A DNA stretch of 64,000 nt, from NCBI GenBank assembly GCA_964035545.1, contig OZ037766.1, positions 12,142,722 through 12,206,721 on the forward strand, in the 5' to 3' direction. The DNA comes from Bugula neritina (Eukaryota; Animalia; Bryozoa). Positions 5,793 through 64,000 of the stretch are shown one piece after another (position 1 is the stretch's first letter; every line of letters starts with the position of its first letter). Position numbers and translations under genes: made by a program. The notes under the pieces were generated by a model that did no database searches, was not told where the DNA came from, and saw nothing but the letters and a program-made list of their open reading frames with translations.

Positions 5793-5999
5793 CAGTTCTC
5801 CCTCCATATCTAACGGTCTAGTTCTCATAAAATGCTATAGGTCATGAGAACGGCCTAGACTCTCGTTTTGTGGCTTATGTATGTGTTTATAGGACAAAAT
5901 GGCCAAATTTAGAGGATCTGTGAGTTAAATCTGGTATTCTACTATGTCACGAATTGAGGTTTCGGACCCGTAGGTTAGTGTGATACAGATAGAGCACTG
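5793..5999. mobile_element. Possible decayed Tigger/pogo-like MITE
   Basis: TA|CAGTTCTCCCTCCATATC ... GATACAGATAGAGCACTG forms an imperfect inverted repeat with CAGT..ACTG ends. The right-hand TSD is not intact. Confidence 0.35.
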
Positions 6000-40500: not shown

Positions 40501-43500
40501 TTTATATTTTTTCATAGGTACTGGAGAACATGCATCTCTGAATGGAATGAATATTGGTAGTATTAGACATGCTTCTGACATTAAGACTGAGAATGTTACT
40601 CCACAATCTCAAGGAATACTAACTGAACAAACAGGTATAATTTTGCTGTATGTCCTTTCATTTTTGCTTCCTGATTTCATTACAACAGTTATCTTTTCAT
40701 TTCATTTGAAATGAAACTATTTATTATACTTTGATAGGTACTGGAGAACATGCATCTCTGAATGGAATGAATATTGGTAGTATTAGACATGCTTCTGATA
40801 TTAAAACTGATAATGTTACTCCACAATCTCAAGGAATACTAACTGAACAAACAGGTGTGTAGCTTTGCTGTTTGCCCTTTTATTTTTGTTTAGTTTTTCA
40901 ATTGAAAGTTTTAGGATTTTATTTATTTAAAATGCAAACATTTAACATGCTTTCAATTGAAGCTTTTAATTATTTAATTTATTTGAATTGAAACCATTTT
41001 ATATTCTTTCATAGGTACTGGAGAACATGCATCTCTGAATGGAATGAATATCGGTAGTATTAGACATGCTTCTGATATTAGAACTGAGAATGTTACTCCA
41101 CAATCTCAAGGAATACTAACTGAACAAACAGGTACATATTTTTTCTTCATGTCCTTTTATTTTGGCTTAGTTTTTCAATTAAAGGTGTTACTTTCTCACT
41201 TCTTTCAATTTCTAACCATTCAACATACTTTCGTAGGTACCGGAGAACATGCATCTCTGAATGGAATGAATATTGGCAGTATTAGACATGCTTCAGATAT
41301 TAAAACTGAGAATGTTACTCCACAATCTCAAGGAATACTAACTGAACAAACAGGTATAGTTTTGCTGTATGGAAAATATTTTGCTTTCATTTTACTCGAT
41401 TAAAACTGATTATTCATTTATTTTATTTATAATGCAATAATTTAATGTATTTTTATAGGTACTGGAGAACATGCATCTCTGAATGGAATGAATATTGGTA
41501 GTATTAGACATGCTTCTGATATCAAAACTGAGAATGTTACTCCACAATCTCAAGGAATACTCACTGAGCAAACAGGTGAATGAATATGTTGAAATTGTTG
41601 GTTTCAATAACATGATATAAATGTCTTTTTTCAGTCAAGATATGGGTTATTTTACTTAATTTAGTGCACATTATATCTCTAGTTGATCACTATTTTCACA
41701 CATTAGCTGCTAATGCACATGATTTTTCACCTCAAACTATTGAAATATTACCAAATGGAATTCAATAATCAAGGTCATTAGTTTTGCTTGATTTCCTACG
41801 CCTGTTACTAATTTCTCATTGAATTAGGATATATGGTCTGTGATGAAAAAATGATCATGGCCTGCACATGTATACTTGGCTCATATGACAATAACGTTGC
41901 CCTTCAACATTGCAGAACCCCTTCCCAGCTTTTTTGCTATACATAATTCAAATCAACACATACAATTTCCAATATAGTGAATTCTCATGAATTTTGAACA
42001 AACTTTAAAATTTGGTTCTGGTTTGCTGATGTGTACTTAATAAATTGAAATGACCTTTTTGTGAATGCTCGCGTCTTTCTACAGGTACAGGAGAACATGC
42101 ATCTCTGAATGGATTGAATATTGGTAGTATTAGACATGCTTCTGATATTAAAACTGAGAATGTAACTCCACAATCTCAAGGAATACTCACTGAACAAACA
42201 GGTGTGTAATTTTGCTGTGTGTCCTTTCATTTTGGCTTCCTTATTTCATTACAACAGTTATCTTTTCATTTCATTTAAAATGAAACTATTTATTATACTT
42301 TGATAGGTACTGGAGAACATGCATCTCTGAATGGAATGAATATTGGTGGTATTAGACATGCTTCTGATATTAAAACTGAGAATGTCACTCCACAATCTCA
42401 AGGAATACTAACTGAACAAACAGGTATATAATTTTGTTGTATTTTTTTTTATTTTAGTTTAGTCATTCAAATAAAGCTGTTAATTAACTTAATTTATTTA
42501 AAATGCAACTATTTATTATAATTTTGTAGGTACTGGAGAACATGCATCTCTGAATGGAATGAATATTGGTAGTATTAGACATGCTTCTGATATTAAAACT
42601 GAGAATGTTACTCCACAATCTCAAGGAATACTTACTGAACAAACAGGTATAATTTTGCTTTATGGAAAATATTTTGGCTTTATTTTATTCTATTTAAACT
42701 GTTTATTCATTAATTTTTTTATAATGCATTAATTTAATATACTTTTCTAGGTACTGGAGAACATGCATCTCTGAATGGAATGAATATCGGTAGTATTAGA
42801 CATGCTTCTGATATTAAAACTGAGAATGTAACTCCACAATCTCAAGGAATACTAACTGAACAAACAGGTATAACTTTGCTGCATGTCTTTTTATTTCCTT
42901 AGTTTTTCAGTAAAAACTTTTATTTAATTTATATAAAATGCAACCGTTTTACATACTTTCAATTAAAGCTTTTAATTATTTAATTTATTTGAATTGAAAC
43001 CATTTTATATTCTATCATAGGTTCCGGAGAACATGCATCTCTGAATGGAATGAATATCGGTAGTATTAGACATGCTTCTGATATTAAAACTGAGAATGTT
43101 ACTCCACAATCTCAAGGAATACTAACTGAACAAACAGGTATTTAATTTTGTTGTATTTTATTTTATTTTAGTTTAGTCATTCAAATAAAGCTGTTAATTA
43201 ACTTAATTTATTTAAAATGCAACTATTTATTATAATTTTGTAGGTACTGGAGAACATGCATCTCTGAATGGAATGAATATTGGTAGTATAAGACATGCTT
43301 CTGATATTAAAACTGAAAATGTTACTCCACAATCTCAAGGAATACTAACTGAACAAACAGGTATAACTTTGCTAAGTGTAGGATTGTTGGTTTCAATCAT
43401 GTATAAATTTATTTTTCCAGTCAAAATGTATTCATGCTCATGTTTTTCTACAGGTACAGGTGGTCACGCTTCCCAGAAAGGCATGAATATGGGTTACACT

Positions 43501-46500
43501 TGGCATGCTGGTGATCATCCCTTAGACAAATTGTCTCAAGAATCACAAGGAATTCTACACCATCAAACTGGTACTGGAGAGCATGCATCTCTGAATGGAA
43601 TGAATATTGGTAGTATTAGACATGCTTCTGATATTAAAACTGAGAATGTTACTCCACAATCTCAAGGAATACTAACTGAACAAACAGGTATAATTTTGCT
43701 GTGTGTCCTTTCATTTTGGCTTCGTTATTTCATTACAACAGTTATTTTTTCATTTCATTTAAAATGAACCTATTTATTATACTTCGATAGGTACTGGAGA
43801 ACATGCATCTCTGAATGGAATGAATATTGGTAGTATTAGACATGCTTCTGATATTAGAACTGAGAATGTTACTCCACAATCTCAAGGAATACTAACTGAA
43901 CAAACAGGTGAATGAATATGTCAAGATGGTTGGTTTCAATATCGTGTTATAAATGTCTTTTTCAGTCAAGATTTGGGTCATTTTACTTAATTTAGTGCAC
44001 ACTATATCTCTAGTTTCTAAGTATTTTCACACTTTCACTGCTAATGCATATGATTTTTTACCTTAAACTATTGAAATATCAACAAATGGAACTCAAACAT
44101 CAAGGTCATTAGTTTTGCTTGATTTCCTACGCCTGTTACTAATTTCTCATTGAATTAGGATATATGGTCTGTGATGAAAAAATGATCATGGCCTGCACAT
44201 GTATACTTGGCTCATATGACAATAACGTTGCCCTTCAACATTGCAGAACCCCCTCCCAGCTTTTTTGCTATGCATAATTCGAATCAACACATACAATTTC
44301 CAATATAGTGAATTCTCATGAATTTTGAACAAACTTTAAATTTTGGTTCTGGTTTGCTGATGTGTACTTAATAAATTGAAATGACCTTTTTGTGAATGCT
44401 CGCGTCTTCCTACAGGTACAGGTGGTCATGCTTCCCAGAAAGGCATGAATATGGGTTACACTTGGCATGCTGGTGATCATCCCTTAGACAAATTGTCTCA
44501 AGAATCACAAGGAATTCTACACCATCAAACTGGTACTGGAGAACATGCATCTCTGAATGGAATGAATATTGGTAGTATAAGACATGCTTCTGATATTAAA
44601 ACTGAGAATGTAACTCCACAATCTCAAGGAATACTAACTGAACAAACAGGTGTGTAGCTTTGCTGTGTGCCCTTTTATTTTTGTTTAGTTTTTCAATTGA
44701 AAGTTTTGGGATTTTATTTATTTAAAATGCAACCATTTAACATGCTTTCAATTAAAGCTTTTAATTATTTAATTTATTTGAATTGAAACCATTTTATATT
44801 CTTTCATAGGTACTGGAGAACATGCATCTCTGAAAGGAATGAATATTGGTAGTATTAGACATGCTTCTGATATTAGAACTGAGAGTGTTACTCCTCAATC
44901 TCAAGGAATACTTACTGAGCAAACAGGTAACTGCATATTTTAAGATTGTTGGTTCCAGTCATGTATAAATGTAATTTCCTGGAATACTCACTGAACAAGC
45001 AGGTATAATTACGCTGTATGGAAGAGATTTTGGTTTCATTTTACTCGATTAAAACTGTTTATTCATCTATTTTATTTATAATGCAATAATTTAATGTATT
45101 TTTATAGGTACTGGAGAACATGCATCTCTGAATGGAATGAATATTGGTAGTATTAGACATGCTTCTGATATTAAAACTGAGAATGTTACTCCACAATCTC
45201 AAGGAATACTAACTGAACAAACAGGTATAACTTTGCTAAGTGTAGGATTGTTGGTTTCAATCATGTAGAAATCTACTTTTCCATTCAAAATGTTTTCATG
45301 CTCATGTTTTTCTACAGGTACAGGTGGTCACGCTTCCCAGAAAAGCATGAATATGGGTTACACTTGGCATGCTGGTGATCATCCCTTAGACAAATTGTCT
45401 CAAGAATCACAAGGAATTCTACACCATCAAACTGGTACTGGAGAGCACGCATCTCTGAATGGAATGAATATTGGTAGTATAAGACATGCTTCTGATATTA
45501 AAACTGAGAATGTTACTCCACAATCTCACGGAATACTCACTGAACAAACAGGTGAATGCCCATGTTAAGACAGTTGGCCTCTATTTAAGCTGTATGTGTA
45601 CGTCTTTGGTGTATTAATGTTGTAATGTCAATTAAAGTCCATGTCTTGCTATACCTAATAGCTATAATTAGTAGACCTCTTTCAATCACTCATTTCACCA
45701 TTATGCGTCTGTCTCGACCCCACTGAACTAACTTAATAAGTGTATCTTGACGGAATACTTTTCATTGCCCACAGCAACTTAGATTTTCTCAGAATTGTCA
45801 AATTTGTGAGTTTCTCAACGTTAGGTGCAACTTCAGGGTTTTTGGCAATTTGAATTAGATGATGATAGCAGTTGTCTCACTACAATTGCTACTCCATTTG
45901 GCTGATATGGATTTTTGAGGCTAACCTTCGACATAAGTTTGGCATCTGAAATAGTTCATAGAAAGTAAGCAAATTATTATCAGATGTAGTCAGAGTTGAG
46001 ACTTTCGTAGATTATTTATTGATACATGTTCTTACAAAGGTAGCCATTTTCAAATGACGTTCTGCGTAAAATGCTTGGGAGATGCGAGAAAGTTATCTTG
46101 AAGCTTAACTTAGCGAAATGTAGTTTTGAGAAGTCTGAACATAGGTATTTAGATCACATAATTGGACAGGGTGTCATCACAGCCGACCCAATTATGATTA
46201 AATCTACAGTCGGCATGTCTGTGCTACAGAATGTGTTAGGATAGCCGCAGCTAAACTCATACTCAAGTAAGGCTACATATATTCCTCAAGGTTTTGTAGG
46301 AGGGATGGAAGTTTAGGTTAGAATGAGACATAGGAATTGGCTATGAGGAACAGTTAAGCTGAAAGTTTCATAATTAGGCTTTATGATTGTAGAATTTTTA
46401 GATGGTAAGCAATCTTGTTCGAAAATTTGAAAATATCCATTACATCTAAGTTCTGGGGTAGAGGGAATTACACCACCCACCAACCTAGTTCATGTTACTA

Positions 46501-49500
46501 GAGTGAGTAACTCTGTTTCGCATAGTACACCCAATTCAAGTTCTGTTCAGGGAATAGACAGGCGCAGCGTTCCTAATGGGCATAGAACAGTTACTTGAGT
46601 AGGTAGGGTTTCAGAGCCTCACACCAGATTTTGTCAGAATCTGTACTATGCCAAAACTTAGTTGACTTAAGTAAATGTACCATCGGAAGAATGTTTAGTA
46701 GTGCACATATATATTATGTTATATAACTTTGCTTTATCTTTCAACTACATGCTTTTGTAACTTTTTATACAATTAAATATTGTTACTGAGTCACTAAGTC
46801 TTCATTTTTGACTGCGGATAAGATGTTATAATGTCAACTACAGTTCATGTCTTGCCATACCTAATAGCTGTAGTGAGTATATATCTATATGTGAATCGTG
46901 CATTCTCTTACTATTGTCAGAGTCAGCATCTATGTACAATATTTGTCTCTAGATTTCATAGTGTTATCATCATTTATATTATTGGTAATTGCACCTAATA
47001 AATCTACAATGTAATTCATTGCAAGTCAACATCATCTTGTTACATATCATTACACTTCATAATGCCAACAAGAAACAAAAACATATAACAGTTGATCAAT
47101 TTGAATTTTTATTTAATTCAAAATTGTAACTATTATACTTCTATAGGTACTGGAGAACATGCATCTCTGAATGGAATGAATATTGGTAGTATTAGACATG
47201 CTTCAGATATTAAAACTGGAAATGTTACTCCACAATCTCAAGGAATACTAACTGAACAAACAGATATTACTTTACTGCATGTCTTTTTATTTGCTTAATT
47301 TTTCAGTAAAAACTGTTATTTAACTTAATTAAAATGCAACCATTTAACATATTTTCAATTAAAGCTTTTAACTATTTAATTTATTTGAATTGAACTTATT
47401 TTATATTATTTCATAGGTACTGGAGAACATGCATCTCTGAATGGAATGAATATTGGTAGTATTAGACATGCTTCTGATATTAGAACTGAGAGTGTTACTC
47501 CACAATCTCAAGGAATACTAACTGAACAAACAGGTATAACTTAGCTAAATGTAAGATTGTTGGTTTCAATCATGTATAAATGTATTTTTTCCAGTCAAAA
47601 TATATTCATGCTCATGTCTTTCTACAGGTACAGGTGGTCACGCTTCCCAGAAAGGAATGAATATGGGTTACACTTGGCATGCTGGTGATCATCCCTTAGA
47701 CAAATTGTCTCAAGAATCACAAGGAATTCTACACCATCAAACTGGTACTGGAGAGCATGCATCTCTGAATGGAATGAATATTGGTAGTATAAGACATGCT
47801 TCTGATATTAAAACTGAGAATGTTACTCCACAATCTCAAGGAATACTAACTGAACAAACAGGTATAGTTTTGCTGTATGGAAAATACTTCGGTTTCATTT
47901 TACTCTATTTAAACTGATTATTCATTAATTTTTTTATAATGCATTATTTTATTATATTTTTATAGGTACTGGAGAACATGCATCTCTGAATGGAATGAAT
48001 ATTGGTAGTATTAGACATGCTTCTGATATTAAAACTGAGAATGTTACTCCACAATCTCAAGGAATACTCACTGAGCAAACAGGTATAACTTAGCTAAATG
48101 TAAGATTGTTGGTTTCAATCATGTATAAATCTATTTTTCCAGTCAAAATATATTCATGCTCGCGTTTTTCTACAGGTACAGGTGGTCACGCCTCCCGGAA
48201 AGGAATGAATATGGGTTACACTTGGCATGCTGGTGATCATCCCTTAGACAAACTGTCTCAAGAATCACAAGGAGTTCTACATCATCAAACTGGTACTGGA
48301 GAACATGCATCTCTGAATGGAATGAATATTGGTAGTATAAGACATGCTTCTGATATTAAAACTGAGAATGTTACTCCACAATCTCAAGGAATACTAACTG
48401 AACAAACAGGTGAAATAATAATTGGTTTATTTTGTAGTTGTTTGTTGTTGATTAACTTGGACTTGTTTTTTCGGCGGACATCCTCTCACTTTTCCTTTTG
48501 TTTTACATTACTTTTAACAAACAGTCTAAGTTCATGATTTTGCATCCTGCACACTACGTTGTGGCACTACTTCTTAGCTTTTATCATACAATAACCTAAA
48601 GGAGCTTAAATCTTTGCTTTTTAATAATTAACTCACTGACATAGAGTCAATTTTCTGTCTGCAAGTGTTTTGGCACAATATTCCCGGGTAGGAAGTTGAA
48701 ACTAGAGTCATTCATCTTGTAAATTGTTCTCTCTCTTTAGTAAGCTGAAACATGATTTACTAGACATCAACAGTAAGGAACAGAAAATAAATAAAACTGA
48801 GTTAGCACAAACAAATAACAGAAACTCATGATTTGGTTTGTCATTGTAACTATTTAACATCTCAGTTATTGGTACCGACGATGCTTCAAAAAGTAAACAG
48901 TAGCAACAAAGTGGTAGGCGAGCATTCATAAGTTGTCTTTCCTTAATTTATCCTTCAACAATTTGCATATTTGAAATGGGTCCTCTCATATGACATCAGG
49001 ACATATGAGGTGTGGCTGTGCATTACCAATTTTTTTAGAAGGCTGTTTCAAGGCTCTCAGTAAAGTCATGAGCTCTATGCCGCTGCCTTGCTTTAAGGTA
49101 TTCATTGGTGTAGCTAAGTTTTCCTTTTTTGTTTCCCTGTTTTTTACGTATGTAATTTTGCATTATTCCTGAAACATTTGCAGAATGGTTGAATTACAAA
49201 GTTGATCTACATTATCATTTAGTCAAAGACTGAATGTATGTGTGATTTTATATGGCTTTGGCGGAAAAACTTTAATTGTAAAAAAAAACTCTTGAATACA
49301 AAAATTGGTGGGCCCAGTTGTAATGAATATGGTGAAAATGATTATTGGGGGAAGTTGTACATGATTCAAAGGGCTTCAACTAGCCCCAACACTGTCACGG
49401 TACAAATTATTGGCATTGTCTGCTGTGAATGAGATATCTATGCAACTTTAAGTTATTGGCCAGCTTTGAAACCATGTTTGCGACACTTGGCTGAGTTCAC

Positions 49501-52500
49501 TAGACTGGGCTCTTAAAACTTGAGAGGCAATGTAACTTTTTATGAAACTTATTTATTAGTTTGCTCATTTATTATGCAAAGAATGTGACAAAATATTTGC
49601 TAGTCTGAAACTTCTGCTTTGATTCTATATATTTCGAGGCACCTGAGAGTGCGCCTAGAAAGGAGGTAAAATAGTACAATGATTAACAGGAAAACATTTT
49701 GAGCATATATTTCAATTAGCCCTGTGGTTCAACTAATCCCACTTTTCTCTATAAGTGAAGTTTACTAGTTTAGGAATACTCACCCAACAAAGAAGTGAAT
49801 GCTCGTGTTACGGCTCTAAGTCTCATTGATGTATGAATGTAATTTCTCAGTTAAAATGTATTAATGACTGTGTCTTTTTACAGGGACAGGTGGTCATGCT
49901 TCCCAGAAAGGAATGAATATGGGTTACACTTGGCATGCTGGTGATCATCCCTTAGACAAATTGTCTCAAGAATCACAAGGAATTCTACACAATCAAACTG
50001 GTACTGGTGAACATGCTTCCCAAAAAGGAATGTCAATTGGTAAAGTGAGAATGGCAGCTGACACTCCCGCTGATGAAATGGCAATGGAATCTCAAGGTGT
50101 TCTCCACTCTCAAACTGGCACTGGGGAACATGCTTCTCAAAAAGGCATGAATATGGGCTATACGTGGCATGCTGGTGATCATCCCTTGGACAAATTGTCT
50201 CAAGAATCACAAGGAATTCTACACCATCAAACTGGTACTGGTGAACATGCTTCTCAAAAAGGAATGTCAATTGGTAAAGTGAGAATGGCAGCTGACACTC
50301 CCGCTGATGAAATGGCAATGGAATCTCAAGGTGTTCTCCACTCTCAAACTGGCACTGGGGAACATGCTTCTCAAAGAGGCATGAATATGGGCTATACTTG
50401 GCATGCTGGTGATCATCCCTTAGACAAATTGTCTCAAGAATCACAAGGAATTCTACACCATCAAACTGGTACTGGTGAACATGCTTCCCAAAAAGGAATG
50501 TCAATTGGTAAAGTGAGAATGGCAGCTGACACTCCCACTGATGAAATGGCAATGGAATCTCAAGGTGTTCTCCACTCTCAAACTGGCACTGGGGAACATG
50601 CTTCTCAAAGAGGCATGAATATGGGCTATACTTGGCATGCTGGTGATCATCCCTTAGACAAATTGTCTCAAGAATCACAAGGAATTCTACACCATCAAAC
50701 TGGTACTGGTGAACATGCTTCCCAAAAAGGAATGTCAATTGGTAAAGTGAGAATGGCAGCTGACACTCCCACTGATGAAATGGCAATGGAATCTCAAGGT
50801 GTTCTCCACTCTCAAACTGGCACTGGGGAACATGCTTCTCAAAAAGGCATGAATATGGGCTATACGTGGCATGCTGGTGATCATCCCTTAGACAAATTGT
50901 CTCAAGAATCACAAGGAATTCTACACCATCAAACTGGTACTGGTGAACATGCTTCCCAAAAAGGAATGTCAATTGGTAAAGTGAGAATGGCAGCTGACAC
51001 TCCCACTGATGAAATGGCAATGGAATCTCAAGGTGTTCTCCACTGTCAAACTGGCACTGGGGAACATGCTTCTCAAAAAGGCATGAATATGGGCTATACT
51101 TGGCATGCTGGTGATCATCCCTTAGACAAATTGTCTCAAGAATCACAAGGAATTCTACACCATCAAACTGGTACTGGTGAACATGCTTCCCAAAAAGGAA
51201 TGTCAATTGGTAAAGTGAGAATGGCAGCTGACACTCCCACTGATGAAATGGCAATGGAATCTCAAGGTGTTCTCTACTCTCAAACTGGCACTGGGGAACA
51301 TGCTTCTCAAAAAGGCATGAATATGGGCTATACTTGGCATGCTGGTGATCATCCCTTAGACAAATTGTCTCAAGAATCACAAGGAGTTCTACACCATCAA
51401 ACTGGTACTGGTGAACATGCTTCCCAAAAAGGAATGTCAATTGGTAAAGTGAGAATGGCAGCTGACACTCCCACTGATGAAATGGCAATGGAATCTCAAG
51501 GTGTTCTCCACTCTCAAACTGGCACTGGGGAACATGCTTCTCAAAAAGGCATGAATATGGGCTATACTTGGCATGCTGGTGATCATCCCTTAGACAAATT
51601 GTCTCAAGAATCACAAGGAATTCTACACCATCAAACTGGTACTGGTGAACATGCTTCCCAAAAAGGAATGTCAATTGGTAAAGTGAGAATGGCAGCTGAC
51701 ACTCCCACTGATGAAATGGCAATGGAATCTCAAGGTGTTCTCCACTCTCAAACTGGCACTGGGGAACATGCTTCTCAAAAAGGCATGAATATGGGCTATA
51801 CGTGGCATGCTGGTGATCATCCCTTAGACAAATTGTCTCAAGAATCACAAGGAATTCTACACCATCAAACTGGTACTGGTGAACATGCTTCTCAAAAAGG
51901 AATGTCAATTGGTAAAGTGAGAATGGCAGCTGACACCCCCGCTGATGAAATGGCAATGGAATCTCAAGGTGTTCTCCACTCTCAAACTGGCACTGGGGAA
52001 CATGCTTCTCAAAAAGGCATGAATATGGGCTATACTTGGCATGCTGGTGATCATCCCTTAGACAAATTGTCTCAAGAATCACAAGGAGTTCTACACCATC
52101 AAACTGGTACTGGTGAACATGCTTCCCAAAAAGGAATGTCAATTGGTAAAGTGAGAATGGCAGCTGACACTCCCACTGATGAAATGGCAATGGGATCTCA
52201 AGGTGTTCTCCACTCTCAAACTGGCACTGGGGAACATGCTTCTCAAAAAGGCATGAATATGGGCTATACTTGGCATGCTGGTGATCATCCCTTAGACAAA
52301 TTGTCTCAAGAATCACAAGGAATTCTACACCATCAAACTGGTACTGGTGAACATGCTTCCCAAAAAGGAATGTCAATTGGTAAAGTGAGAATGGCAGCTG
52401 ACACTCCCACTGATGAAATGGCAATGGAATCTCAAGGTGTTCTCCACTCTCAAACTGGCACTGGGGAACATGCTTCTCAAAGAGGCATGAATATGGGCTA

Positions 52501-55500
52501 TACTTGGCATGCTGGTGATCATCCCTTAGACAAATTGTCTCAAGAATCACAAGGAATTCTACACCATCAAACTGGTACTGGTGAACATGCTTCCCAAAAA
52601 GGAATGTCAATTGGTAAAGTGAGAATGGCAGCTGACACTCCCACTGATGAAATGGCAATGGAATCTCAAGGTGTTCTCCACTCTCAAACTGGCACTGGGG
52701 AACATGCTTCTCAAAGAGGCATGAATATGGGCTATACTTGGCATGCTGGTGATCATCCCTTAGACAAATTGTCTCAAGAATCACAAGGAATTCTACACCA
52801 TCAAACTGGTACTGGTGAACATGCTTCCCAAAAAGGAATGTCAATTGGTAAAGTGAGAATGGCAGCTGACACTCCCACTGATGAAATGGCAATGGAATCT
52901 CAAGGTGTTCTCCACTCTCAAACTGGCACTGGGGAACATGCTTCTCAAAAAGGCATGAATATGGGCTATACGTGGCATGCTGGTGATCATCCCTTAGACA
53001 AATTGTCTCAAGAATCACAAGGAATTCTACACCATCAAACTGGTACTGGTGAACATGCTTCCCAAAAAGGAATGTCAATTGGTAAAGTGAGAATGGCAGC
53101 TGACACTCCCACTGATGAAATGGCAATGGAATCTCAAGGTGTTCTCCACTGTCAAACTGGCACTGGGGAACATGCTTCTCAAAAAGGCATGAATATGGGC
53201 TATACTTGGCATGCTGGTGATCATCCCTTAGACAAATTGTCTCAAGAATCACAAGGAATTCTACACCATCAAACTGGTACTGGTGAACATGCTTCCCAAA
53301 AAGGAATGTCAATTGGTAAAGTGAGAATGGCAGCTGACACTCCCACTGATGAAATGGCAATGGAATCTCAAGGTGTTCTCTACTCTCAAACTGGCACTGG
53401 GGAACATGCTTCTCAAAAAGGCATGAATATGGGCTATACTTGGCATGCTGGTGATCATCCCTTAGACAAATTGTCTCAAGAATCACAAGGAGTTCTACAC
53501 CATCAAACTGGTACTGGTGAACATGCTTCCCAAAAAGGAATGTCAATTGGTAAAGTGAGAATGGCAGCTGACACTCCCACTGATGAAATGGCAATGGAAT
53601 CTCAAGGTGTTCTCCACTCTCAAACTGGCACTGGGGAACATGCTTCTCAAAAAGGCATGAATATGGGCTATACTTGGCATGCTGGTGATCATCCCTTAGA
53701 CAAATTGTCTCAAGAATCACAAGGAATTCTACACCATCAAACTGGTACTGGTGAACATGCTTCCCAAAAAGGAATGTCAATTGGTAAAGTGAGAATGGCA
53801 GCTGACACTCCCACTGATGAAATGGCAATGGAATCTCAAGGTGTTCTCCACTCTCAAACTGGCACTGGGGAACATGCTTCTCAAAAAGGCATGAATATGG
53901 GCTATACGTGGCATGCTGGTGATCATCCCTTAGACAAATTGTCTCAAGAATCACAAGGAATTCTACACCATCAAACTGGTACTGGTGAACATGCTTCTCA
54001 AAAAGGAATGTCAATTGGTAAAGTGAGAATGGCAGCTGACACTCCCGCTGATGAAATGGCAATGGAATCTCAAGGTGTTCTCCACTCTCAAACTGGCACT
54101 GGGGAACATGCTTCTCAAAAAGGCATGAATATGGGCTATACTTGGCATGCTGGTGATCATCCCTTAGACAAATTGTCTCAAGAATCACAAGGAGTTCTAC
54201 ACCATCAAACTGGTACTGGTGAACATGCTTCCCAAAAAGGAATGTCAATTGGTAAAGTGAGAATGGCAGCTGACACTCCCACTGATGAAATGGCAATGGG
54301 ATCTCAAGGTGTTCTCCACTCTCAAACTGGCACTGGGGAACATGCTTCTCAAAAAGGCATGAATATGGGCTATACTTGGCATGCTGGTGATCATCCCTTA
54401 GACAAATTGTCTCAAGAATCACAAGGAATTCTACACCATCAAACTGGTACTGGTGAACATGCTTCCCAAAAAGGAATGTCAATTGGTAAAGTGAGAATGG
54501 CAGCTGACACTCCCACTGATGAAATGACAATAGAATCTCAAGGTGTTCTCCACTCTCAAACTGGCACTGGGGAACATGCTTCTCAAAAAGGCATGAATAT
54601 GGGCTATACGTGGCATGCTGGTGATCATCCCTTAGACAAATTGTCTCAAGAATCACAAGGAATTCTACACCATCAAACTGGTACTGGTGAACATGCTTCC
54701 CAAAAAGGAATGTCAATTGGTAAAGTGAGAATGGCAGCTGACACTCCCACTGATGAAATGGCAATGGAATCTCAAGGTGTTCTCCACTCTCAAACTGGCA
54801 CTGGGGAACATGCTTCTCAAAAAGGCATGAATATGGGCTATACGTGGCATGCTGGTGATCATCCCTTAGACAAATTGTCTCAAGAATCACAAGGAATTCT
54901 ACACCATCAAACTGGTACTGGTGAACATGCTTCCCAAAAAGGAATGTCAATTGGTAAAGTGAGAATGGCAGCTGACACTCCCACTGATGAAATGGCAATG
55001 GAATCTCAAGGTGTTCTCCACTCTCAAACTGGCACTGGGGAACATGCTTCTCAAAAAGGCATGAATATGGGCTATACTTGGCATGCTGGTGATCATCCCT
55101 TAGACAAATTGTCTCAAGAATCACAAGGAATTCTACACCATCAAACTGGTACTGGTGAACATGCTTCTCAAAAAGGAATGTCAATTGGTAAAGTGAGAAT
55201 GGCAGCTGACACTCCCACTGATGAAATGGGAATGAAATCTCAAGGTGTTCTCCACTCTCAAACTGGCACTGGGGAACATGCTTCTCAAAAAGGCATGAAT
55301 ATGGGCTATACTTGGCATGCTGGTGATCATCCCTTAGACAAATTGTCTCAAGAATCACAAGGAGTTCTACACCATCAAACTGGTACTGGTGAACATGCTT
55401 CCCAAAAAGGAATGTCAATTGGTAAAGTGAGAATGGCAGCTGACACTCCCACTGATGAAATGGCAATGAAATCTCAAGGTGTTCTCCACTATCAAACTGG

Positions 55501-58500
55501 CACTGGGGAACATGCTTCTCAAAAAGGCATGAATATGGGCTATACTTGGCATGCTGGTGATCATCCCTTAGACAAATTGTCTCAAGAATCACAAGGAATT
55601 CTACACCATCAAACTGGTACTGGTGAACATGCTTCCCAAAAAGGAATGTCAATTGGTAAAGTGAGAATGGCAGCTGACACTCCCACTGATGAAATGGCAA
55701 TGGAATCTCAAGGTGTTCTCCACTCTCAAACTGGCACTGGGGAACATGCTTCTCAAAAAGGCATGAATATGGGCTATACGTGGCATGCTGGTGATCATCC
55801 CTTAGACAAATTGTCTCAAGAATCACAAGGAATTCTACACCATCAAACTGGTACTGGTGAACATGCTTCTCAAAAAGGAATGTCAATTGGTAAAGTGAGA
55901 ATGGCAGCTGACACTCCCGCTGATGAAATGGCAATGGAATCTCAAGGTGTTCTCCACTCTCAAACTGGCACTGGGGAACATGCTTCTCAAAAAGGCATGA
56001 ATATGGGCTATACTTGGCATGCTGGTGATCATCCCTTAGACAAATTGTCTCAAGAATCACAAGGAGTTCTACACCATCAAACTGGTACTGGTGAACATGC
56101 TTCCCAAAAAGGAATGTCAATTGGTAAAGTGAGAATGGCAGCTGACACTCCCACTGATGAAATGGCAATGGGATCTCAAGGTGTTCTCCACTCTCAAACT
56201 GGCACTGGGGAACATGCTTCTCAAAAAGGCATGAATATGGGCTATACTTGGCATGCTGGTGATCATCCCTTAGACAAATTGTCTCAAGAATCACAAGGAA
56301 TTCTACACCATCAAACTGGTACTGGTGAACATGCTTCCCAAAAAGGAATGTCAATTGGTAAAGTGAGAATGGCAGCTGACACTCCCACTGATGAAATGGC
56401 AATGGAATCTCAAGGTGTTCTCCACTCTCAAACTGGCACTGGGGAACATGCTTCTCAAAAAGGCATGAATATGGGCTATACTTGGCATGCTGGTGATCAT
56501 CCCTTAGACAAATTGTCTCAAGAATCACAAGGAATTCTACACCATCAAACTGGTACTGGTGAACATGCTTCCCAAAAAGGAATGTCAATTGGTAAAGTGA
56601 GAATGGCAGCTGACACTCCCACTGATGAAATGGCAATGGAATCTCAAGGTGTTCTCCACTCTCAAACTGGCACTGGGGAACATGCTTCTCAAAAAGGCAT
56701 GAATATGGGCTATACGTGGCATGCTGGTGATCATCCCTTAGACAAATTGTCTCAAGAATCACAAGGAATTCTACACCATCAAACTGGTACTGGTGAACAT
56801 GCTTCCCAAGAAGGAATGTCAATTGGTAAAGTGAGAATGGCAGCTGACACTCCCGCTGATGAAATGGCAATGGAATCTCAAGGTGTTCTCCACTGTCAAA
56901 CTGGCACTGGGGAACATGCTTCTCAAAAAGGCATGAATATGGGCTATACTTGGCATGCTGGTGATCATCCCTTAGACAAATTGTCTCAAGAATCACAAGG
57001 AATTCTACACCATCAAACTGGTACTGGTGAACATGCTTCCCAAAAAGGAATGTCAATTGGTAAAGTGAGAATGGCAGCTGACACTCCCACTGATGAAATG
57101 GCAATGGAATCGCAAGGTGTTCTCCACTCTCAAACTGGCACTGGGGAACATGCTTCTCAAAAAGGCATGAATATGGGCTATACTTGGCATGCTGGTGATC
57201 ATCCCTTAGACAAATTGTCTCAAGAATCACAAGGAATTCTACACCATCAAACTGGTACTGGTGAACATGCTTCCCAAAAAGGAATGTCAATTGGTAAAGT
57301 GAGAATGGCAGCTGACACTCCCGCTGATGAAATGGCAATGGAATCTCAAGGTGTTCTCCACTCTCAAACTGGCACTGGGGAACATGCTTCTCAAAAAGGC
57401 ATGAATATGGGCTATACTTGGCATGCTGGTGATCATCCCTTAGACAAATTGTCTCAAGAATCACAAGGAATTCTACACCATCAAACTGGTACTGGTGAAC
57501 ATGCTTCCCAAAAAGGAATGTCAATTGGTAAAGTGAGAATGGCAGCTGACACTCCCACTGATGAAATGGCAATGGAATCTCAAGGTGTTCTCCACTCTCA
57601 AACTGGCACTGGGGAACATGCTTCTCAAAAAGGCATGAATATGGGCTATACGTGGCATGCTGGTGATCATCCCTTAGACAAATTGTCTCAAGAATCACAA
57701 GGAATTCTACACCATCAAACTGGTACTGGTGAACATGCTTACCAAAAAGGAATGTCAATTGGTAAAGTGAGAATGGCAGCTGACACTCCCACTGATGAAA
57801 TGGCAATGGAATCTCAAGGTGTTCTCCACTCTCAAACTGGCACTGGGGAACATGCTTCTCAAAAAGGCATGAATATGGGCTATACTTGGCATGCTGGTGA
57901 TCATCCCTTAGACAAATTGTCTCAAGAATCACAAGGAGTTCTACACCATCAAACTGGTACTGGTGAACATGCTTCCCAAAAAGGAATGTCAATTGGTAAA
58001 GTGAGAATGGCAGCTGACACTCCCACTAATGAAATGGCAATGGAATCTCAAGGTGTTCTCCACTCTCAAACTGGCACTGGGGAACATGCTTCTCAAAAAG
58101 GCATGAATATGGGCTATACTTGGCATGCTGGTGATCATCCCTTAGACAAATTGTCTCAAGAATCACAAGGAATTCTACACCATCAAACTGGTACTGGTGA
58201 ACATGCTTCCCAAAAAGGAATGTCAATTGGTAAAGTGAGAATGGCAGCTGACACTCCCACTGATGAAATGGCAATTGAATCTCAAGGTGTTCTCCACTCT
58301 CAAACTGGCACCGGGGAACATGCTTCTCAAAAAGGCATGAATATGGGCTATACTTGGCATGCTGGTGATCATCCCTTAGACAAATTGTCTCAAGAATCAC
58401 AAGGAATTCTACACCATCAAACTGGTACTGGTGAACATGCTTCCCAAAAAGGAATGTCAATTGGTAAAGTGAGAATGGCAGCTGACACTCCCACTGATGA

Positions 58501-61500
58501 AATGGCAATGGAATCTCAAGGTGTTCTCCACTCTCAAACTGGCACTGGGGAACATGCTTCTCAAAAAGGCATGAATATGGGCTATACTTGGCATGCTGGT
58601 GATCATCCCTTAGACAAATTGTCTCAAGAATCACAAGGAATTCTACACCATCAAACTGGTACTGGTGAACATGCTTCCCAAAAAGGAATGTCAATTGGTA
58701 AAGTGAGAATGGCAGCTGACACTCCCACTGATGAAATGGCAATGGAATCTCAAGGTGTTCTCCACTCTCAAACTGGCACTGGGGAACATGCTTCTCAAAA
58801 AGGCATGAATATGGGCTATACTTGGCATGCTGGTGATCATCCCTTAGACAAATTGTCTCAAGAATCACAAGGAATTCTACACCATCAAACTGGTACTGGT
58901 GAACATGCTTCCCAAAAAGGAATGTCAATTGGTAAAGTGAGAATGGCAGCTGACACTCCCACTGATGAAATGGCAATGGAATCTCAAGGTGTTCTCCACT
59001 CTCAAACTGGCACTGGGGAACATGCTTCTCAAAAAGGCATGAATATGGGCTATACGTGGCATGCTGGTGATCATCCCTTAGACAAATTGTCTCAAGAATC
59101 ACAAGGAATTCTACACCATCAAACTGGTACTGGTGAACATGCTTCCCAAAAAGGTATGTCAATTGGTAAAGTGAGAATGGCAGCTGACACTCCCACTGAT
59201 GAAATGGCAATGGAATCTCAAGGTGTTCTCCACTCTCAAACTGGCACTGGGGAACATGCTTCTCAAAAAGGCATGAATATGGGCTATACTTGGCATGCTG
59301 GTGATCATCCCTTAGACAAATTGTCTCAAGAATCACAAGGAGTTCTACACCATCAAACTGGTACTGGTGAACATGCTTCCCAAAAAGGAATGTCAATTGG
59401 TAAAGTGAGAATGGCAGCTGACACTCCCACTGATGAAATGGCAATGGAATCTCAAGGTGTTCTCCACTCTCAAACTGGCACTGGGGAACATGCTTCTCAA
59501 AAAGGCATGAATATGGGCTATACTTGGCATGCTGGTGATCATCCCTTAGACAAATTGTCTCAAGAATCACAAGGAATTCTACACCATCAAACTGGTACTG
59601 GTGAACATACTTCCCAAAAAGGAATGTCAATTGGTAAAGTGAGAATGGCAGCTGACACTCCCACTGATGAAATGGCAATGGAATCTCAAGGTGTTCTCCA
59701 CTCTCAAACTGGCACTGGGGAACATGCTTCTCAAAAAGGCATGAATATGGGCTATACTTGGCATGCTGGTGATCATCCCTTGGACAAATTGTCTCAAGAA
59801 TCACAAGGAATTCTACACCATCAAACTGGTACTGGTGAACATGCTTCCCAAAAAGGAATGTCAATTGGTAAAGTGAGAATGGCGGCTGACACTCCCACTG
59901 CTGAAATGGCAATGGAATCTCAAGGTGTTCTCCACTCTCAAACTGGCACTGGGGAACATGCTTCTCAAAAAGGCATGAATATGGGCTATACTTGGCATGC
60001 TGGTGATCATCCCTTAGACAAATTGTCTCAAGAATCACAAGGAATTCTACACCATCAAACTGGTACTGGTGAACATGCTTCCCAAAAAGGAATGTCAATT
60101 GGTAAAGTGAGAATGGCAGCTGACACTCCCACTGATGAAATGGCAATGGAATCTCAAGGTGTTCTCCACTCTCAAACTGGCACTGGGGAACATGCTTCTC
60201 AAAAAGGCATGAATATGGGCTATACTTGGCATGCTGGTGATCATCCCTTGGACAAATTGTCTCAAGAATCACAAGGAATACTACATCATCAAACTGGTAC
60301 TGGTGAACATGCTTCCCAAAAAGGAATGTCAATTGGTAAAGTGAGAATGGCAGCTGACACTCCCACTGATGAAATGGCAATGGAATCTCAAGGTGTTCTC
60401 CACTCTCAAACTGGCACTGGGGAACATGCTTCTCAAAAAGGCATGAATATGGGCTATACTTGGCATGCTGGTGATCATCCCTTAGACAAATTGTCTCAAG
60501 AATCACAAGGAATTCTACACCATCAAACTGGTACTGGTGAACATGCTTCCCAAAAAGGAATGTCAATTGGTAAAGTGAGAATGGCAGCTGACACTCCCAC
60601 TGATGAAATGGCAATGGAATCTCAAGGTGTTCTCCACTCTCAAACTGGCACTGGGGAACATGCTTCTCAAAAAGGCATGAATATGGGCTATACGTGGCAT
60701 GCTGGTGATCATCCCTTAGACAAATTGTCTCAAGAATCACAAGGAATTCTACACCATCAAACTGGTACTGGTGAACATGCTTCCCAAAAAGGAATGTCAA
60801 TTGGTAAAGTGAGAATGGCAGCTGACACTCCCACTGATGAAATGGCAATGGAATCTCAAGGTGTTCTCCACTCTCAAACTGGCACTGGGGAACATGCTTC
60901 TCAAAAAGGCATGAATATGGGCTATACTTGGCATGCTGGTGATCATCCCTTAGACAAATTGTCTCAAGAATCACAAGGAGTTCTACACCATCAAACTGGT
61001 ACTGGTGAACATGCTTCCCAAAAAGGAATGTCAATTGGTAAAGTGAGAATGGCAGCTGACACTCCCACTGATGAAATGGCAATGGAATCTCAAGGTGTTC
61101 TCCACTCTCAAACTGGCACTGGGGAACATGCTTCTCAAAAAGGCATGAATATGGGCTATACTTGGCATGCTGGTGATCATCCCTTAGACAAATTGTCTCA
61201 AGAATCACAAGGAATTCTACACCATCAAACTGGTACTGGTGAACATGCTTCCCAAAAAGGAATGTCAATTGGTAAAGTGAGAATGGCAGCTGACACTCCC
61301 ACTGATGAAATGGCAATGGAATCTCAAGGTGTTCTCCACTCTCAAACTGGCACTGGGGAACATGCTTCTCAAAAAGGCATGAATATGGGCTATACTTGGC
61401 ATGCTGGTGATCATCCCTTGGACAAATTGTCTCAAGAATCACAAGGAATTCTACACCATCAAACTGGTACTGGTGAACATGCTTCCCAAAAAGGAATGTC

Positions 61501-64000
61501 AATTGGTAAAGTGAGAATGGCGGCTGACACTCCCACTGATGAAATGGCAATGGAATCTCAAGGTGTTCTCCACTCTCAAACTGGCACTGGGGAACATGCT
61601 TCTCAAAAAGGCATGAATATGGGCTATACTTGGCATGCTGGTGATCATCCCTTAGACAAATTGTCTCAAGAATCACAAGGAATTCTACACCATCAAACTG
61701 GTACTGGTGAACATGCTTCCCAAAAAGGAATGTCAATTGGTAAAGTGAGAATGGCGGCTGACACTCCCACTGATGAAATGGCAATGGAATCTCAAGGTGT
61801 TCTCCACTCTCAAACTGGCACTGGGGAACATGCTTCTCAAAAAGGCATGAATATGGGCTATACTTGGCATGCTGGTGATCATCCCTTAGACAAATTGTCT
61901 CAAGAATCACAAGGAATTCTACACCATCAAACTGGTACTGGTGAACATGCTTCTCAAAAAGGAATGTCAATTGGTAAAGTGAGAATGGCAGCTGACACTC
62001 CCACTGATGAAATGGCAATGGAATCTCAAGGTGTTCTCCACTCTCAAACTGGCACTGGGGAACATGCTTCTCAAAAAGGCATGAATATGGGCTATACTTG
62101 GCATGCTGGTGATCATCCCTTGGACAAATTGTCTCAAGAATCACAAGGAATACTACATCATCAAACTGGTACTGGTGAACATGCTTCCCAAAAAGGAATG
62201 TCAATTGGTAAAGTGAGAATGGCAGCTGACACTCCCACTGATGAAATGACAATAGAATCTCAAGGTGTTCTCCACTCTCAAACTGGCACTGGGGAACATG
62301 CTTCTCAAAAAGGCATGAATATGGGCTATACTTGGCATGCTGGTGATCATCCCTTGGACAAATTGTCTCAAGAATCACAAGGAATTCTACATCATCAAAC
62401 TGGTACTGGTGAACATGCTTCCCAAAAAGGAATGTCAATTGGTAAAGTGAGAATGGCGGCTGACACTCCCACTGATGAAATGGCAATGGATTCTCAAGGT
62501 GTTCTCCACTCTCAAACTGGCACTGGGGAACATGCTTCTCAAAAAGGCATGAATATGGGCTATACTTGGCATGCTGGTGATCATCCCTTAGACAAATTGT
62601 CTCAAGAATCACAAGGAATTCTACACCATCAAACTGGTACTGGTGAACATGCTTCTCAAAAAGGAATGTCAATTGGTAAAGTGAGAATGGCAGCTGACAC
62701 TCCCACTGCTGAAATGGCAATGGAATCTCAAGGTGTTCTCCACATTCAAACTGGCACTGGGGAACATGCTTCTCAAAAAGGCATGAATATGGGCTATACT
62801 TGGCATGCTGGTGATCATCCCTTGGACAAATTGTCTCAAGAATCACAAGGAATTCTACATCATCAAACTGGTACTGGTGAACATGCTTCCCAAAAAGGAA
62901 TGTCAATTGGTAAAGTGAGAATGGCAGCTGACACTCCCACTGATGAAATGACAATGGAATCTCAAGGTGTTCTCCACTCTCAAACTGGCACTGGGGAACA
63001 TGCTTCTCAAAAAGGCATGAATATGGGCTATACGTGGCATGCTGGTGATCATCCCTTGGACAAATTGTCTCAAGAATCACAAGGAATTCTACATCATCAA
63101 ACTGGTACTGGTGAACATGCTTCCCAAAAAGGAATGTCAATTGGTAAAGTGAGAATGGCAGCTGACACTCCCACTGCTGAAATGGCAATGGAATCTCAAG
63201 GTGTTCTCCACTCTCAAACTGGCACTGGGGAACATGCTTCTCAAAAAGGCATGAATATGGGCTATACTTGGCATGCTGGTGATCATCCCTTGGACAAATT
63301 GTCTCAAGAATCACAAGGAATTCTACATCATCAAACTGGTACTGGTGAACATGCTTCCCAAAAAGGAATGTCAATTGGTAAAGTGAGAATGGCGGCTGAC
63401 ACTCCCACTGATGAAATGACAATGGAATCTCAAGGTGTTCTCCACTCTCAAACTGGCACTGGGGAACATGCTTCTCAAAAAGGCATGAATATGGGCTATA
63501 CTTGGCATGCTGGTGATCATCCCTTGGACAACTTCTCTCAAGAATCACAAGGAATTCTACACCATCAAACTGGTACTGGTGAACATGCTTCCCAAAAAGG
63601 AATGTCAATTGGTAAAGTGAGAATGGCAGCTGACACTCCCACTGATGAAATGACAATAGAATCTCAAGGTGTTCTCCACTCTCAAACTGGCACTGGGGAA
63701 CATGCTTCTCAAAAAGGCATGAATATGGGCTATACTTGGCATGCTGGTGATCATCCCTTGGACAAATTGTCTCAAGAATCACAAGGAATTCTACATCATC
63801 AAACTGGTACTGGTGAACATGCTTCCCAAAAAGGAATGTCAATTGGTAAAGTGAGAATGGCGGCTGACACTCCCACTGATGAAATGACAATGGAATCTCA
63901 AGGTGTTCTCCACTCTCAAACTGGCACTGGGGAACATGCTTCTCAAAAAGGCATGAATATGGGCTATACTTGGCATGCTGGTGATCATCCCTTAGACAAA
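10463..64000 (+). CDS. Giant calponin/transgelin(MP20)-family protein: CH domain + about 200 CLIK-derived 39-aa repeats (multi-exon, 3' end outside window)
   Basis: Frame-consistent GT-AG exon chain from ATG 10463 through the CH domain, GPK...RNFTMEQL...IIGLQSG linker and GTNKFASQKGM repeats into derived-repeat exons and a >14-kb open exon. Confidence 0.88.
10562..10720. mobile_element. Short intronic MITE (about 159 bp)
   Basis: TAGGTGCAGTGATGGAGAAATTGAG ... CTCAATTTCTCCACTACTGCTCCTA, a 25-bp inverted repeat with 3 mismatches. Confidence 0.7.
11882..12085 (+). mobile_element. tRNA-derived SINE-like element (decayed)
   Basis: A-box-like TGGCCTATTGG (11882) and B-box-like GGTTCAAATACC (11926) at tRNA-like spacing, followed by a non-tRNA body. 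No cloverleaf. The 3' end is approximate. Confidence 0.45.
12284..12370 (+). CDS. Phase-0 exon DIKTQTFKETAADGTVTVTTRTTTTYEGG
   Basis: cag|GAT ... GGG|gtgaga, 87 nt, open, more GC-rich than its flanks. Confidence 0.7.
12929..13012 (+). CDS. Phase-0 exon RTEVQESKEVHKPQQQIVIKQPESRRRQ
   Basis: ttttag|AGA ... CAG|gtttgc, 84 nt, open. Confidence 0.65.
13064..14840 (+). repeat. Four tandem units of about 440 bp, each with a phase-0 exon (13235-13351, 13679-13804, 14113-14238, 14561-14686) encoding DGRTVEEV.PDDSVVRRRTSRS.VSSS..DSLTSRR.QR
   Basis: Each copy has ctgtag|GAT ... CGT|gtatgt. Lengths are 117/126/126/126 nt, and the only exonic indel is 9 nt, in frame. Confidence 0.85.
14845..14967 (+). 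CDS. Phase-0 exon NADTAQELEDDDSMNIVRRSRTSLPGRSRITHRRIGSEYKA
   Basis: gtag|AAC ... GCG|gtaagc, 123 nt, open. Confidence 0.72.
15327..15443 (+). CDS. Phase-0 exon SNEDQSEEGISSSSQHSFSYGGDGESQIFRTGLEDNLHS
   Basis: tttctag|TCA ... AGT|gtgagt, 117 nt, open. Confidence 0.7.
15552..15701 (+). CDS. Phase-0 exon VNKREYERDTRKDPFSSTSTSTTKFEYGESRDTAPTLQKVEGLPEENDDV (3' boundary uncertain)
   Basis: ttttag|GTA, open hydrophilic frame, GTG|gtgagg donor at 15702. The frame stays open to 15890, so a later donor is possible. Confidence 0.55.
16322..18332 (+). CDS. Calponin-homology (CH) domain, three exons: 16322-16452, 16856-16958, 18195-18332
   Basis: Spliced translation LLAKYDYGAENEVREWIQAVTG...ELKSGVVLCNLISAL...AFKQMENIEIYLKAASLYGV...IFPTVDLFENRNLGAVIAGLQSLG has the calponin/MP20 CH hallmarks (KYD, EW, LKxGxxLC, FKQMENI, F.TVDL.E). 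Phases 2 and 0 match across the junctions. Confidence 0.95.
18553..18670 (+). CDS. Linker exon AQRHEFSGATCGPKPTVKNKRNFTMEQLKNGDSIIGLQS(G)
   Basis: Canonical calponin GPK....R.F..EQL..G..IIGLQ.G motif. gtcag| ... G|gtaggt, phase 0 to 1. Confidence 0.93.
19392..20918 (+). CDS. Three 234-nt phase-1 exons (19392-19625, 20298-20531, 20685-20918), each with two canonical calponin (CLIK) repeats
   Basis: GTNKFASQKGMSMG(A/K)VRHI(A/S)DIRADD....G.G.I.LQ(A/S) x6 with 39-aa period. Synonymous sites are diverged between copies. Confidence 0.95.
21254..21373 (+). CDS. 120-nt phase-1 exon, divergent transitional repeat (E)GGSSAKSQGVVYGSMRHAADTKVEPWIDQKGQGIVTSQT(G)
   Basis: TACTAAC branch point at 21237-21243, aag acceptor, G|gtactt donor. 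It keeps the G..RH.AD and QG.....Q.G repeat signature. Confidence 0.75.
26459..29456 (-). mobile_element. Decayed Academ-type DNA transposon (about 3.0 kb) inserted in an array intron
   Basis: TAT|TAGTCTAGAGGTAACTTCCCA ... TGGGATGTTAAACTTCTAGACTA|TAT gives an imperfect TIR with TAG..CTA ends and a 3-bp TSD. Internal remnants of an XPG-like GCD motif and a Cys-rich CXC tail match the domain content known for Academ elements. Confidence 0.75.
27210..27923 (-). pseudogene. Remnant of Academ protein: XPG/FEN1-like nuclease segment + CXC cysteine cluster
   Basis: IIKSQDIDVFIL...LPGFHTLAGCDFIS (27923-27663), and CCCKTSCKTS*CKCQKSSMQCTAVCPCKDCLN (about 27305-27210) with an in-frame stop at 27275-27273. 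Several further disruptions lie between them. Confidence 0.7.
31020..31487 (+). CDS. 468-nt four-repeat exon (B-C-B-A)
   Basis: ctacag|GTACAGG ... ACAG|gtacaa. It is the only exon before 49884 that contains the type C repeat (GMSIGKVRMAADTPTDEMAMESQGVLHSQT). Confidence 0.85.
37197..38666 (+). mobile_element. Internally deleted, decayed Gypsy LTR retrotransposon in an intron (copy 1)
   Basis: Diverged direct repeats start at 37197 and 38403. The 3' LTR (38403-38666) has TGTTATA..TATAACA ends after a purine-rich GGATAGGA. RT remnants read ATPFG*YGFLRLTFNISLASE and LKLNLAKCSFEKSEHRYLDHIIGQGVITADP. Confidence 0.75.
45618..47090 (+). mobile_element. Second copy of the same decayed Gypsy relic
   Basis: Near-identical to 37197-38666 at an offset of about 8421 bp, including the same intron flanks. 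3' LTR at 46824-47090. Confidence 0.75.
49884..64000 (+). CDS. Giant intronless exon (>14.1 kb, >4,700 aa): about 60 tandem 234-bp units encoding alternating B and C CLIK-derived repeats
   Basis: tttttacag|GGACAGGT phase-1 acceptor. The unit is GTGEHASQKGMNMGYTWHAGDHPLDKLSQESQGILHHQT-GTGEHASQKGMSIGKVRMAADTPTDEMAMESQGVLHSQT. No stop or indel was seen up to the window end, which is why it is absent from the ORF track. Confidence 0.92.

Follow-up and report, generated by a model that had tools for sequence, protein, structure and literature searches.

The last 14 kb and more of the 64,000-bp stretch of the Bugula neritina genome analyzed here (the window) read as a single open frame built from nearly identical 234-bp units. 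The locus raises the question of whether so large an array is a genuine exon, to which family its repeats belong, and what kind of protein a gene that contains it would make. In vertebrates, members of the calponin family carry 1–3 repeats and are regarded as small regulators of actin; the size indicated here is attained in muscle by few protein families, nebulin and titin among them. We consider it likely that the array is the largest exon of a giant bryozoan calponin-family gene, with a product that would bind along the sides of actin in muscle filaments.

Extent and Unit Structure of the Giant Exon

Tandem Repeats Finder reported an array at 49895–64000 with a period of 234 bp, 60.3 copies, 98% matches, and 0% indels, and a nested period of 117 bp with 69% matches inside it. 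A preliminary description, made from the letters alone, had counted about 60 near-identical 234-bp units in strict B-C alternation with only point variants, and both statements hold: in every unit printed the 78-residue translation consists strictly of a 39-residue B half followed by a 39-residue C half, and the three variants given as examples lie at 51044–51046 (S-to-C), 51275 (H-to-Y), and 58028 (D-to-N). The + frame from 49886 continues for 4705 codons without a stop and is the sole fully open frame among the six. Antisense ORFs of 2704 and 1954 aa also run across the array, and one antisense frame contains a single stop.

The window corresponds to G000:C2:12142722-12206721. We fetched the next 40 kb, as had been proposed earlier, and carried the window numbering beyond 64000 (extended coordinates). 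Seven more units (1.7 kb) lie past the window edge, and the exon ends at extended 65678 with a GT donor (...CAAACTG/GTAATT, where the slash marks the splice site); the stop codon follows later exons downstream. The exon and its acceptor are as follows.

49882..49883, + strand: AG splice acceptor of the giant exon, with the pyrimidine run gtgtctttttacAG/GG (from sequence; the exon opens at 49884 after ttttacAG)
49884..64000, + strand: part of the giant exon in the window (repeat finder, open frame, unit-by-unit translation)
49884–65678 in extended coordinates (end = G000:C2:12208399), + strand: full giant exon, 15,795 bp = 135 x 117 bp

The full exon comprises 67.5 units of 234 bp, or 135 calponin-derived repeats alternating between B and C, and is of phase 1-1. 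On its own it encodes 5,265 aa (~562 kDa). The array has a pI of 5.9 with 8.9% His and 7.6% Met, and its computed net charge, about −220 at pH 7, shrinks to about −19 at pH 6. The acceptor pattern ...AG/G(T/G)AC... is common to the giant exon and the other repeat exons.

Assignment of the Repeat Family

Four B-C units scored 55.5 bits against PF00402 in 8 stretches (cut-off 21.1). Taken singly, B reaches 16.1 bits and C 19.7 bits, just below the cut-off, compared with 53.2 bits for the canonical motif, so that their membership of PF00402 rests on the summed score together with the flanking canonical repeats. Canonical two-repeat exons of the gene score 62.1 and 55.4 bits, and the 8-repeat exon just downstream of the array scores 144.6 bits. 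A genome-wide PF00402 scan of the 216-Mb assembly placed matches on both flanks of the array, where the repeats read ...LQxGTNKFASQKGMSMGAVRH..., which is the calponin-family (CLIK) motif. Within the array the period is exactly 39 aa, and the calponin core ...Q.G.n..ASQ.GM...G..R is present. Aligned with calponins of other animals, the repeats show little or no variation in the columns Q, G, SQ, GM, G, and R, apart from a Trp at the R position in B, and the ASQKGMxxG core is almost invariant across all 135 repeats. B and C are also strongly diverged from canonical CLIK sequence, with GTGEHASQ in place of GTNKFASQ. On sequence criteria, the 39-residue B and C halves are diverged repeats of the Pfam Calponin family (CLIK repeats), and their closest named relatives are the scallop calponin BAP84555.1 and nematode calponin-repeat proteins.

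Other assignments were tried and rejected. No nebulin Pfam match was found at E values up to 10, and the higher-order period is 2 repeats rather than seven modules. A protein of the UNC-87/CLIK-1 type, which has no CH domain, does not fit the CH-domain exons found directly upstream of the first CLIK exons. Giant exons of the S100-fused, filaggrin-like, or mucin-like kind find no Pfam support, Pro makes up 2.6% of the array, and the upstream domain is CH.

Searches for giant relatives were also made. A word search returned none in the 2587–8232-aa band and only two nematode proteins of ~710 aa in the 643–2047-aa band, and in an exhaustive HMMER search with 170 matches the longest true relative has ~1014 aa. 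Matches of more than 1000 aa were rejected as calponins: five of the six checked in Pfam are WD40/STAND proteins found through shared periodicity, and none of the six has a calponin repeat. The absence of giant relatives is weak evidence, because the libraries are thin for animals and the 23-repeat mollusc proteins discussed below were not returned either. As a separate observation, tandem calponin repeats (query L009:2770-3693) matched bacterial WD40/STAND proteins in phmmer with E values of 1e-11 to 1e-15, and beta-propeller lyases weakly. These matches are probably artifacts of the shared ~40-residue period and a trap for automatic annotation.

Architecture of the Gene

A protein-level scan of the surroundings found the same 39-aa module throughout the locus on the + strand. 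The gene as predicted spans ~61 kb, starts with a CH domain, and has ~246 CLIK repeats in ~85 repeat exons, a total summed over exons that were searched one by one. If all exons are used they encode ~9,800 aa, and the predicted product is about 1 MDa. The parts of the gene around the giant exon are listed here.

16322..18670, + strand: calponin-type CH domain and linker exons (Pfam and PDB matches), comprising the next four entries
16322–16453, + strand: CH exon 1 (PF00307, 20.7 bits over 44 aa)
about 16860–16970, + strand: probable CH/linker exon (from sequence)
18195–about 18330, + strand: CH exon (PDB sequence matches)
18544–18670, + strand: linker exon, ending ...IIGLQSG/gtaggt in the same phase as the repeat exons
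19392..21378, + strand: canonical calponin-repeat exons with 7 repeats, three two-repeat exons and one single diverged repeat (PF00402)
22873..48409, + strand: ~70 small phase-1 exons with 84 repeats, 57 single "A" exons of exactly 117 bp and B+A exons of 234 bp
31020..31487, + strand: intron-less B-C-B-A exon of 468 bp; apart from the giant exon, no other part of the genome has a C repeat
48410..49883, + strand: intron 5' of the giant exon, with a dispersed repeat inside at about 49000–49750
extended 66770–71368, + strand: downstream CLIK exons with 17 repeats (protein-level scan)
extended 76371–77186, + strand: last 3 CLIK repeats, closing with the stop (protein-level scan)

The sequence at 18195–18386 matches the CH domains of transgelin-2, transgelin, and calponin in the PDB (E 1e-5 to 0.02), and the CH exons lie on the same strand as the giant exon, 31 kb upstream of it. 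The repeat exons are all of phase 1 with donors of the form ...ACTG/GT..., and all 57 single-A exons are bounded by AG and GT at a length of exactly 117 bp. Because all exons are of phase 1-1, length isoforms are possible. The genome contains over 40 copies of the dispersed repeat at 49000–49750, with identities of 68–77%.

An A-type exon at 47147–47263 has GA in place of the GT donor and may be a dead exon within the array of small exons. That array is interrupted by gaps of 1.6–3 kb (26343–29469, 37136–38722, and 45557–47146), which were probably caused by the insertion of transposons into introns. An open frame of 451 aa on the + strand (extended 73425–74777; L009:9425-10000 and L010:1-777) is flanked by calponin exons of its own strand. 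It contains a 13-aa Gln/Pro-rich unit, TYQQPGNMQLQHT, repeated some ten times, matches nothing in Pfam, and may represent either a nested gene or an alternative C-terminal exon. At the start of the window, a GC-rich block at 1–2700 (58% against ~32% around it) contains a 289-aa ORF on the − strand (1789–2658) with a CCHC zinc knuckle. This ORF resembles a retrotransposon Gag, but Pfam gave no match to it at E values up to 0.1.

Expression and Copy Number

Four runs were compared with 47600–52400, namely X1 (DNA), X15 (oligo-dT RNA), and X2 and X9, which are RNA by guess. The run search had returned coded runs of one organism together with marine, biofilm, and symbiont metagenomes, and all runs are in the form of contigs, so that the depths given here are rough and not quantitative. 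A contig of X15 joins 47859 to 47964 at a GT..AG joint, with the 104-nt intron between two small exons removed, and in contigs of X2 and X9 an A exon is joined directly to an A exon, an arrangement absent from the DNA. Each of X2, X9, and X15 has a 264-nt contig in the array, a length equal to 234 + 30 and the closed-loop signature of a k = 31 graph, which in X9 and X15 reads C-B-C, an order unique to the giant exon. The intron and transposon sequence at 48415–49883 gave no contig in X2, X9, or X15, whereas DNA run X1 covers the region. The exon is expressed, since array sequence occurs in RNA libraries without the flanking intron, two of the three runs being RNA by guess; the suspicion that the region might lack RNA coverage was not borne out. 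In two runs the array contig and the A-exon contig had comparable RNA depths, a weak measure when taken from contigs. No contig of X2, X9, or X15 was found to join the giant exon to its neighbors or to the CH domain, and we therefore infer from phase and position that the giant exon and the CH domain share a mature mRNA.

In X1, the depth of the array is 4777–6041 against ~95–123 in the single-copy flank, which corresponds to ~40–65 copies, and the B-C repeats occur at no other genomic locus. The possibility of assembly over-expansion that had been raised for the array was thus answered by read depth in favor of a long array. The 67 units fall into 38 distinct DNA types in non-periodic order.

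Selection and Conservation

Among the 67 full units there are 44 distinct point variants. Eighteen of the 44 are synonymous, against 21.5% expected (p = 0.003), third codon positions hold 24 of them (p = 0.003), and none creates a stop in the + frame. Read in antisense, the same 44 variants comprise 5 synonymous and 39 nonsynonymous changes, with one stop. The comparison of synonymous and nonsynonymous variants that had been recommended for the units therefore gives a synonymous excess in the + frame only. Antisense coding was rejected on these counts, and because the variants are unconstrained in that frame, its near-openness is a by-product of repeating a stop-free 234-bp unit. Nonsynonymous unit variants are concentrated in the variable linker part of C, the pattern expected if the CLIK core still matters. 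The 57 A exons are mutually 95.9% identical, compared with 71.1% for their introns, and their variants are 23 synonymous and 8 nonsynonymous.

The public draft GCA_010799875.2 holds the same locus on a contig (VXIV02002110.1:1-12586) that begins inside the array, contains at least 31 (31.1) units, and then runs on through the exons that also follow the array here. Between the two assemblies, 11.9% of aligned sites mismatch in the introns downstream of the array and 4.2% in the downstream calponin exons; the draft and the genome studied here are probably different cryptic lineages of a species complex. Of the 234 sites of the B-C consensus only 2 differ, both of them synonymously, and the two 78-aa consensus sequences are the same. 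At one of the 2 sites, unit position 135, C/T variation occurs in each of the arrays. With ~28 differences expected under neutrality, the finding of 2 synonymous ones indicates that the array predates the lineage split and has been under strong purifying selection. Judged by this comparison, the array is old, homogenized, and under purifying selection, and its conservation between lineages can be measured. A very recent expansion, as first suggested, does not agree with at least 31 units of so similar a consensus, with a shared variable site, in a lineage that is 11.9% diverged in its introns.

The giant exon is a coding, selected exon. The earlier claim of a single coding exon with its frame retained is upheld by the 4705 codons without a stop, the bias of the variants, the RNA contigs, and the unchanged consensus in the other assembly.

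Gene calls in the draft at the array are fragments broken by frameshifts. A word search yielded a single near-identical entry among public proteins, a "hypothetical protein" of 108 aa from Bugula neritina, and such fragments, the only calls of the public draft at the array, are a caution for annotation.

Origin of the Array

Mean pairwise identity of the units is 98.4%, and the order of unit types begins ABCCDEFGHIGCCDEFGJIK... One block of 9 units occurs twice, with 1633 bp identical between the copies, and more shared blocks occur at offsets of 8, 10, and 17 units. Block duplications of this sort are the pattern of unequal exchange in multi-unit steps. The array would have grown by unequal exchange of a two-repeat 234-bp module, with block duplications of up to 9 units, and its uniformity would be kept by concerted evolution together with purifying selection. 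Ongoing homogenization, which the preliminary description had offered alongside recent expansion, is plausible in view of the mean identity, the 38 types among 67 units, and the duplicated 9-unit block.

The two-repeat 234-bp exon is the common unit of the family in this genome and is found in three canonical exons of the gene and in most exons of a paralog.

G000:C1:268.2-275.3 kb, − strand: paralog with a CH domain and 18 canonical CLIK repeats, mostly in two-repeat (234-bp) exons, one of which is duplicated five times

Because exons of this size are ordinary in both the gene and the paralog, the simplest explanation of the period of two is that it reflects the duplicated unit. The period had been likened to the super-repeat of nebulin; CLIK repeats are not nebulin repeats and the duplication unit alone can account for the period, which leaves a nebulin-like super-repeat unproven. 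Descent of B-C from the X-Y pair of the paralog was also considered and rejected, since B and C are instead nearest (66%) to repeats of the exon immediately downstream of the array and have no specific link to that pair. Two modes of repeat growth, exon-plus-intron duplication and duplication inside an exon, are thus found in one gene.

Proposed Function of the Product

With a predicted CH domain at its start and no sign of secretion, the product is most likely a cytoplasmic, actin-associated muscle chain. It would be a largely unstructured, multivalent chain bound to the sides of F-actin, and by analogy with UNC-87 and calponin, in which the CLIK motifs have actin-binding and actin-bundling activity, it would stabilize or bundle long actin filaments in bryozoan muscle. 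Actin binding by the B-C repeats themselves may be weakened or lost, as suggested by the GTGEHASQ divergence, the single motifs under the Pfam cut-off, and the acidic, His/Met-rich character of the array. An AlphaFold2 model of four units (14-row alignment) was beta-rich and solenoid-like at low confidence (pLDDT 47.7) and is uninformative on order or disorder. It had no Foldseek match at E below 0.5, and a PDB sequence search found no solved calponin-repeat structure.

The exon could be coding and selected and yet have a different task, with B-C forming an acidic His/Met-rich disordered spacer or spring like the PEVK segment of titin, or a pH- or metal-responsive segment, placed between canonical actin-binding repeats at both ends of the protein. 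We regard this as the less likely account. It is favored by the low single-motif scores of B and C beside the canonical motif, the replacement of basic GTNK by GTGE, the composition of the array with its large change of charge between pH 7 and pH 6, and the retention of canonical repeats at both ends of the gene. It sits poorly with the near-invariant ASQKGMxxG core and with the clustering of nonsynonymous variants in the C linker, and no spring or metal-binding family was matched in Pfam.

Explanations in which the array has no role in a protein fare much worse. The high identity of the units, the block duplications, an antisense strand kept nearly open purely by repetition, and the lack of any junction read to neighboring exons would all suit a transcribed neutral expansion, that is, an exonized minisatellite usually skipped or tolerated and open only through recent copying of a stop-free unit. 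Such an expansion is very improbable when the protein consensus is unchanged, with 2 synonymous changes, in a lineage whose introns are ~12% diverged and whose array has at least 31 units; the synonymous and third-position excess also speaks against it, as does, with the weakness of that measure, the RNA depth of the array contig relative to the A-exon contig in two runs. More improbable still is a short B-C repeat over-expanded by the assembler. Mis-assembly is a familiar hazard of tandem arrays whose units are 98% identical, but over-expansion is unlikely here because the assembly-free k-mer depth is ~40–65 times that of the flank with no second B-C locus in the genome, the 38 unit types follow a non-periodic order, and the independent draft has at least 31 units up to the end of its contig. 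We retain, as likely, the reading of the array as the largest exon of a giant calponin-family gene with an actin-associated product.

A bolder extension of this reading, in our judgment improbable, is that bryozoans independently built a thin-filament protein on the scale of nebulin or titin. Some 246 CLIK modules would then lie along actin, and exon copy number, through allele length or splice choice, would set or stabilize filament length in very fast retractor muscles.

Comparison with Known Systems

A literature search found no paper linking Bugula with this gene. Nebulin, a vertebrate thin-filament protein of ~6669 aa (PMC7109182), is the nearest analogue in size and logic. It too is a giant chain, of comparable or smaller size, with more than 180 short (35–40 aa) repeats of an actin-binding family and many duplicated exons of the same phase. 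Its repeats are unrelated, however, and it has a seven-module super-repeat and a C-terminal SH3 domain where the gene described here has a period of two and a predicted N-terminal CH domain, so that a nebulin-like role would be an analogy only.

UNC-87, with seven CLIK repeats, is described as binding actin and myosin and as maintaining muscle actin filaments (PMC4436780; bioRxiv 10.1101/2020.04.29.069104). UNC-87 and CLIK-1 of Caenorhabditis elegans consist mainly of CLIK repeats and offer the best functional model for a multi-CLIK chain, but they differ from the bryozoan product in having seven repeats, no CH domain, a size of ~40–60 kDa, and neither a giant exon nor an alternating two-type array. 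The paralog in this genome also differs, with only 18 repeats, all canonical, and no giant exon.

The closest likeness is to the invertebrate calponin-like proteins that, as predicted here, combine an N-terminal CH domain with tandem ~39-aa CLIK repeats and vary in copy number by repeat expansion. These have been reported with 5 repeats in mussel, 7 in tapeworm, and up to 23 in molluscs (Ono 2021, as cited in PMC10285543), and that 2023 review states the invertebrate range as 7 to 23. Against that reported maximum of 23, the bryozoan gene has ~246 repeats, of which 135, more than half, lie in one 15.8-kb exon, and the range of the calponin repeat is thereby extended about tenfold. Unlike the repeats of those proteins, the expanded ones here are a derived subtype (GTGEHAS for GTNKFAS), acidic and His/Met-rich, in a predicted product of ~1 MDa. 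The gene is a natural test case for multivalent CLIK chains as possible stabilizers or rulers of filament length.
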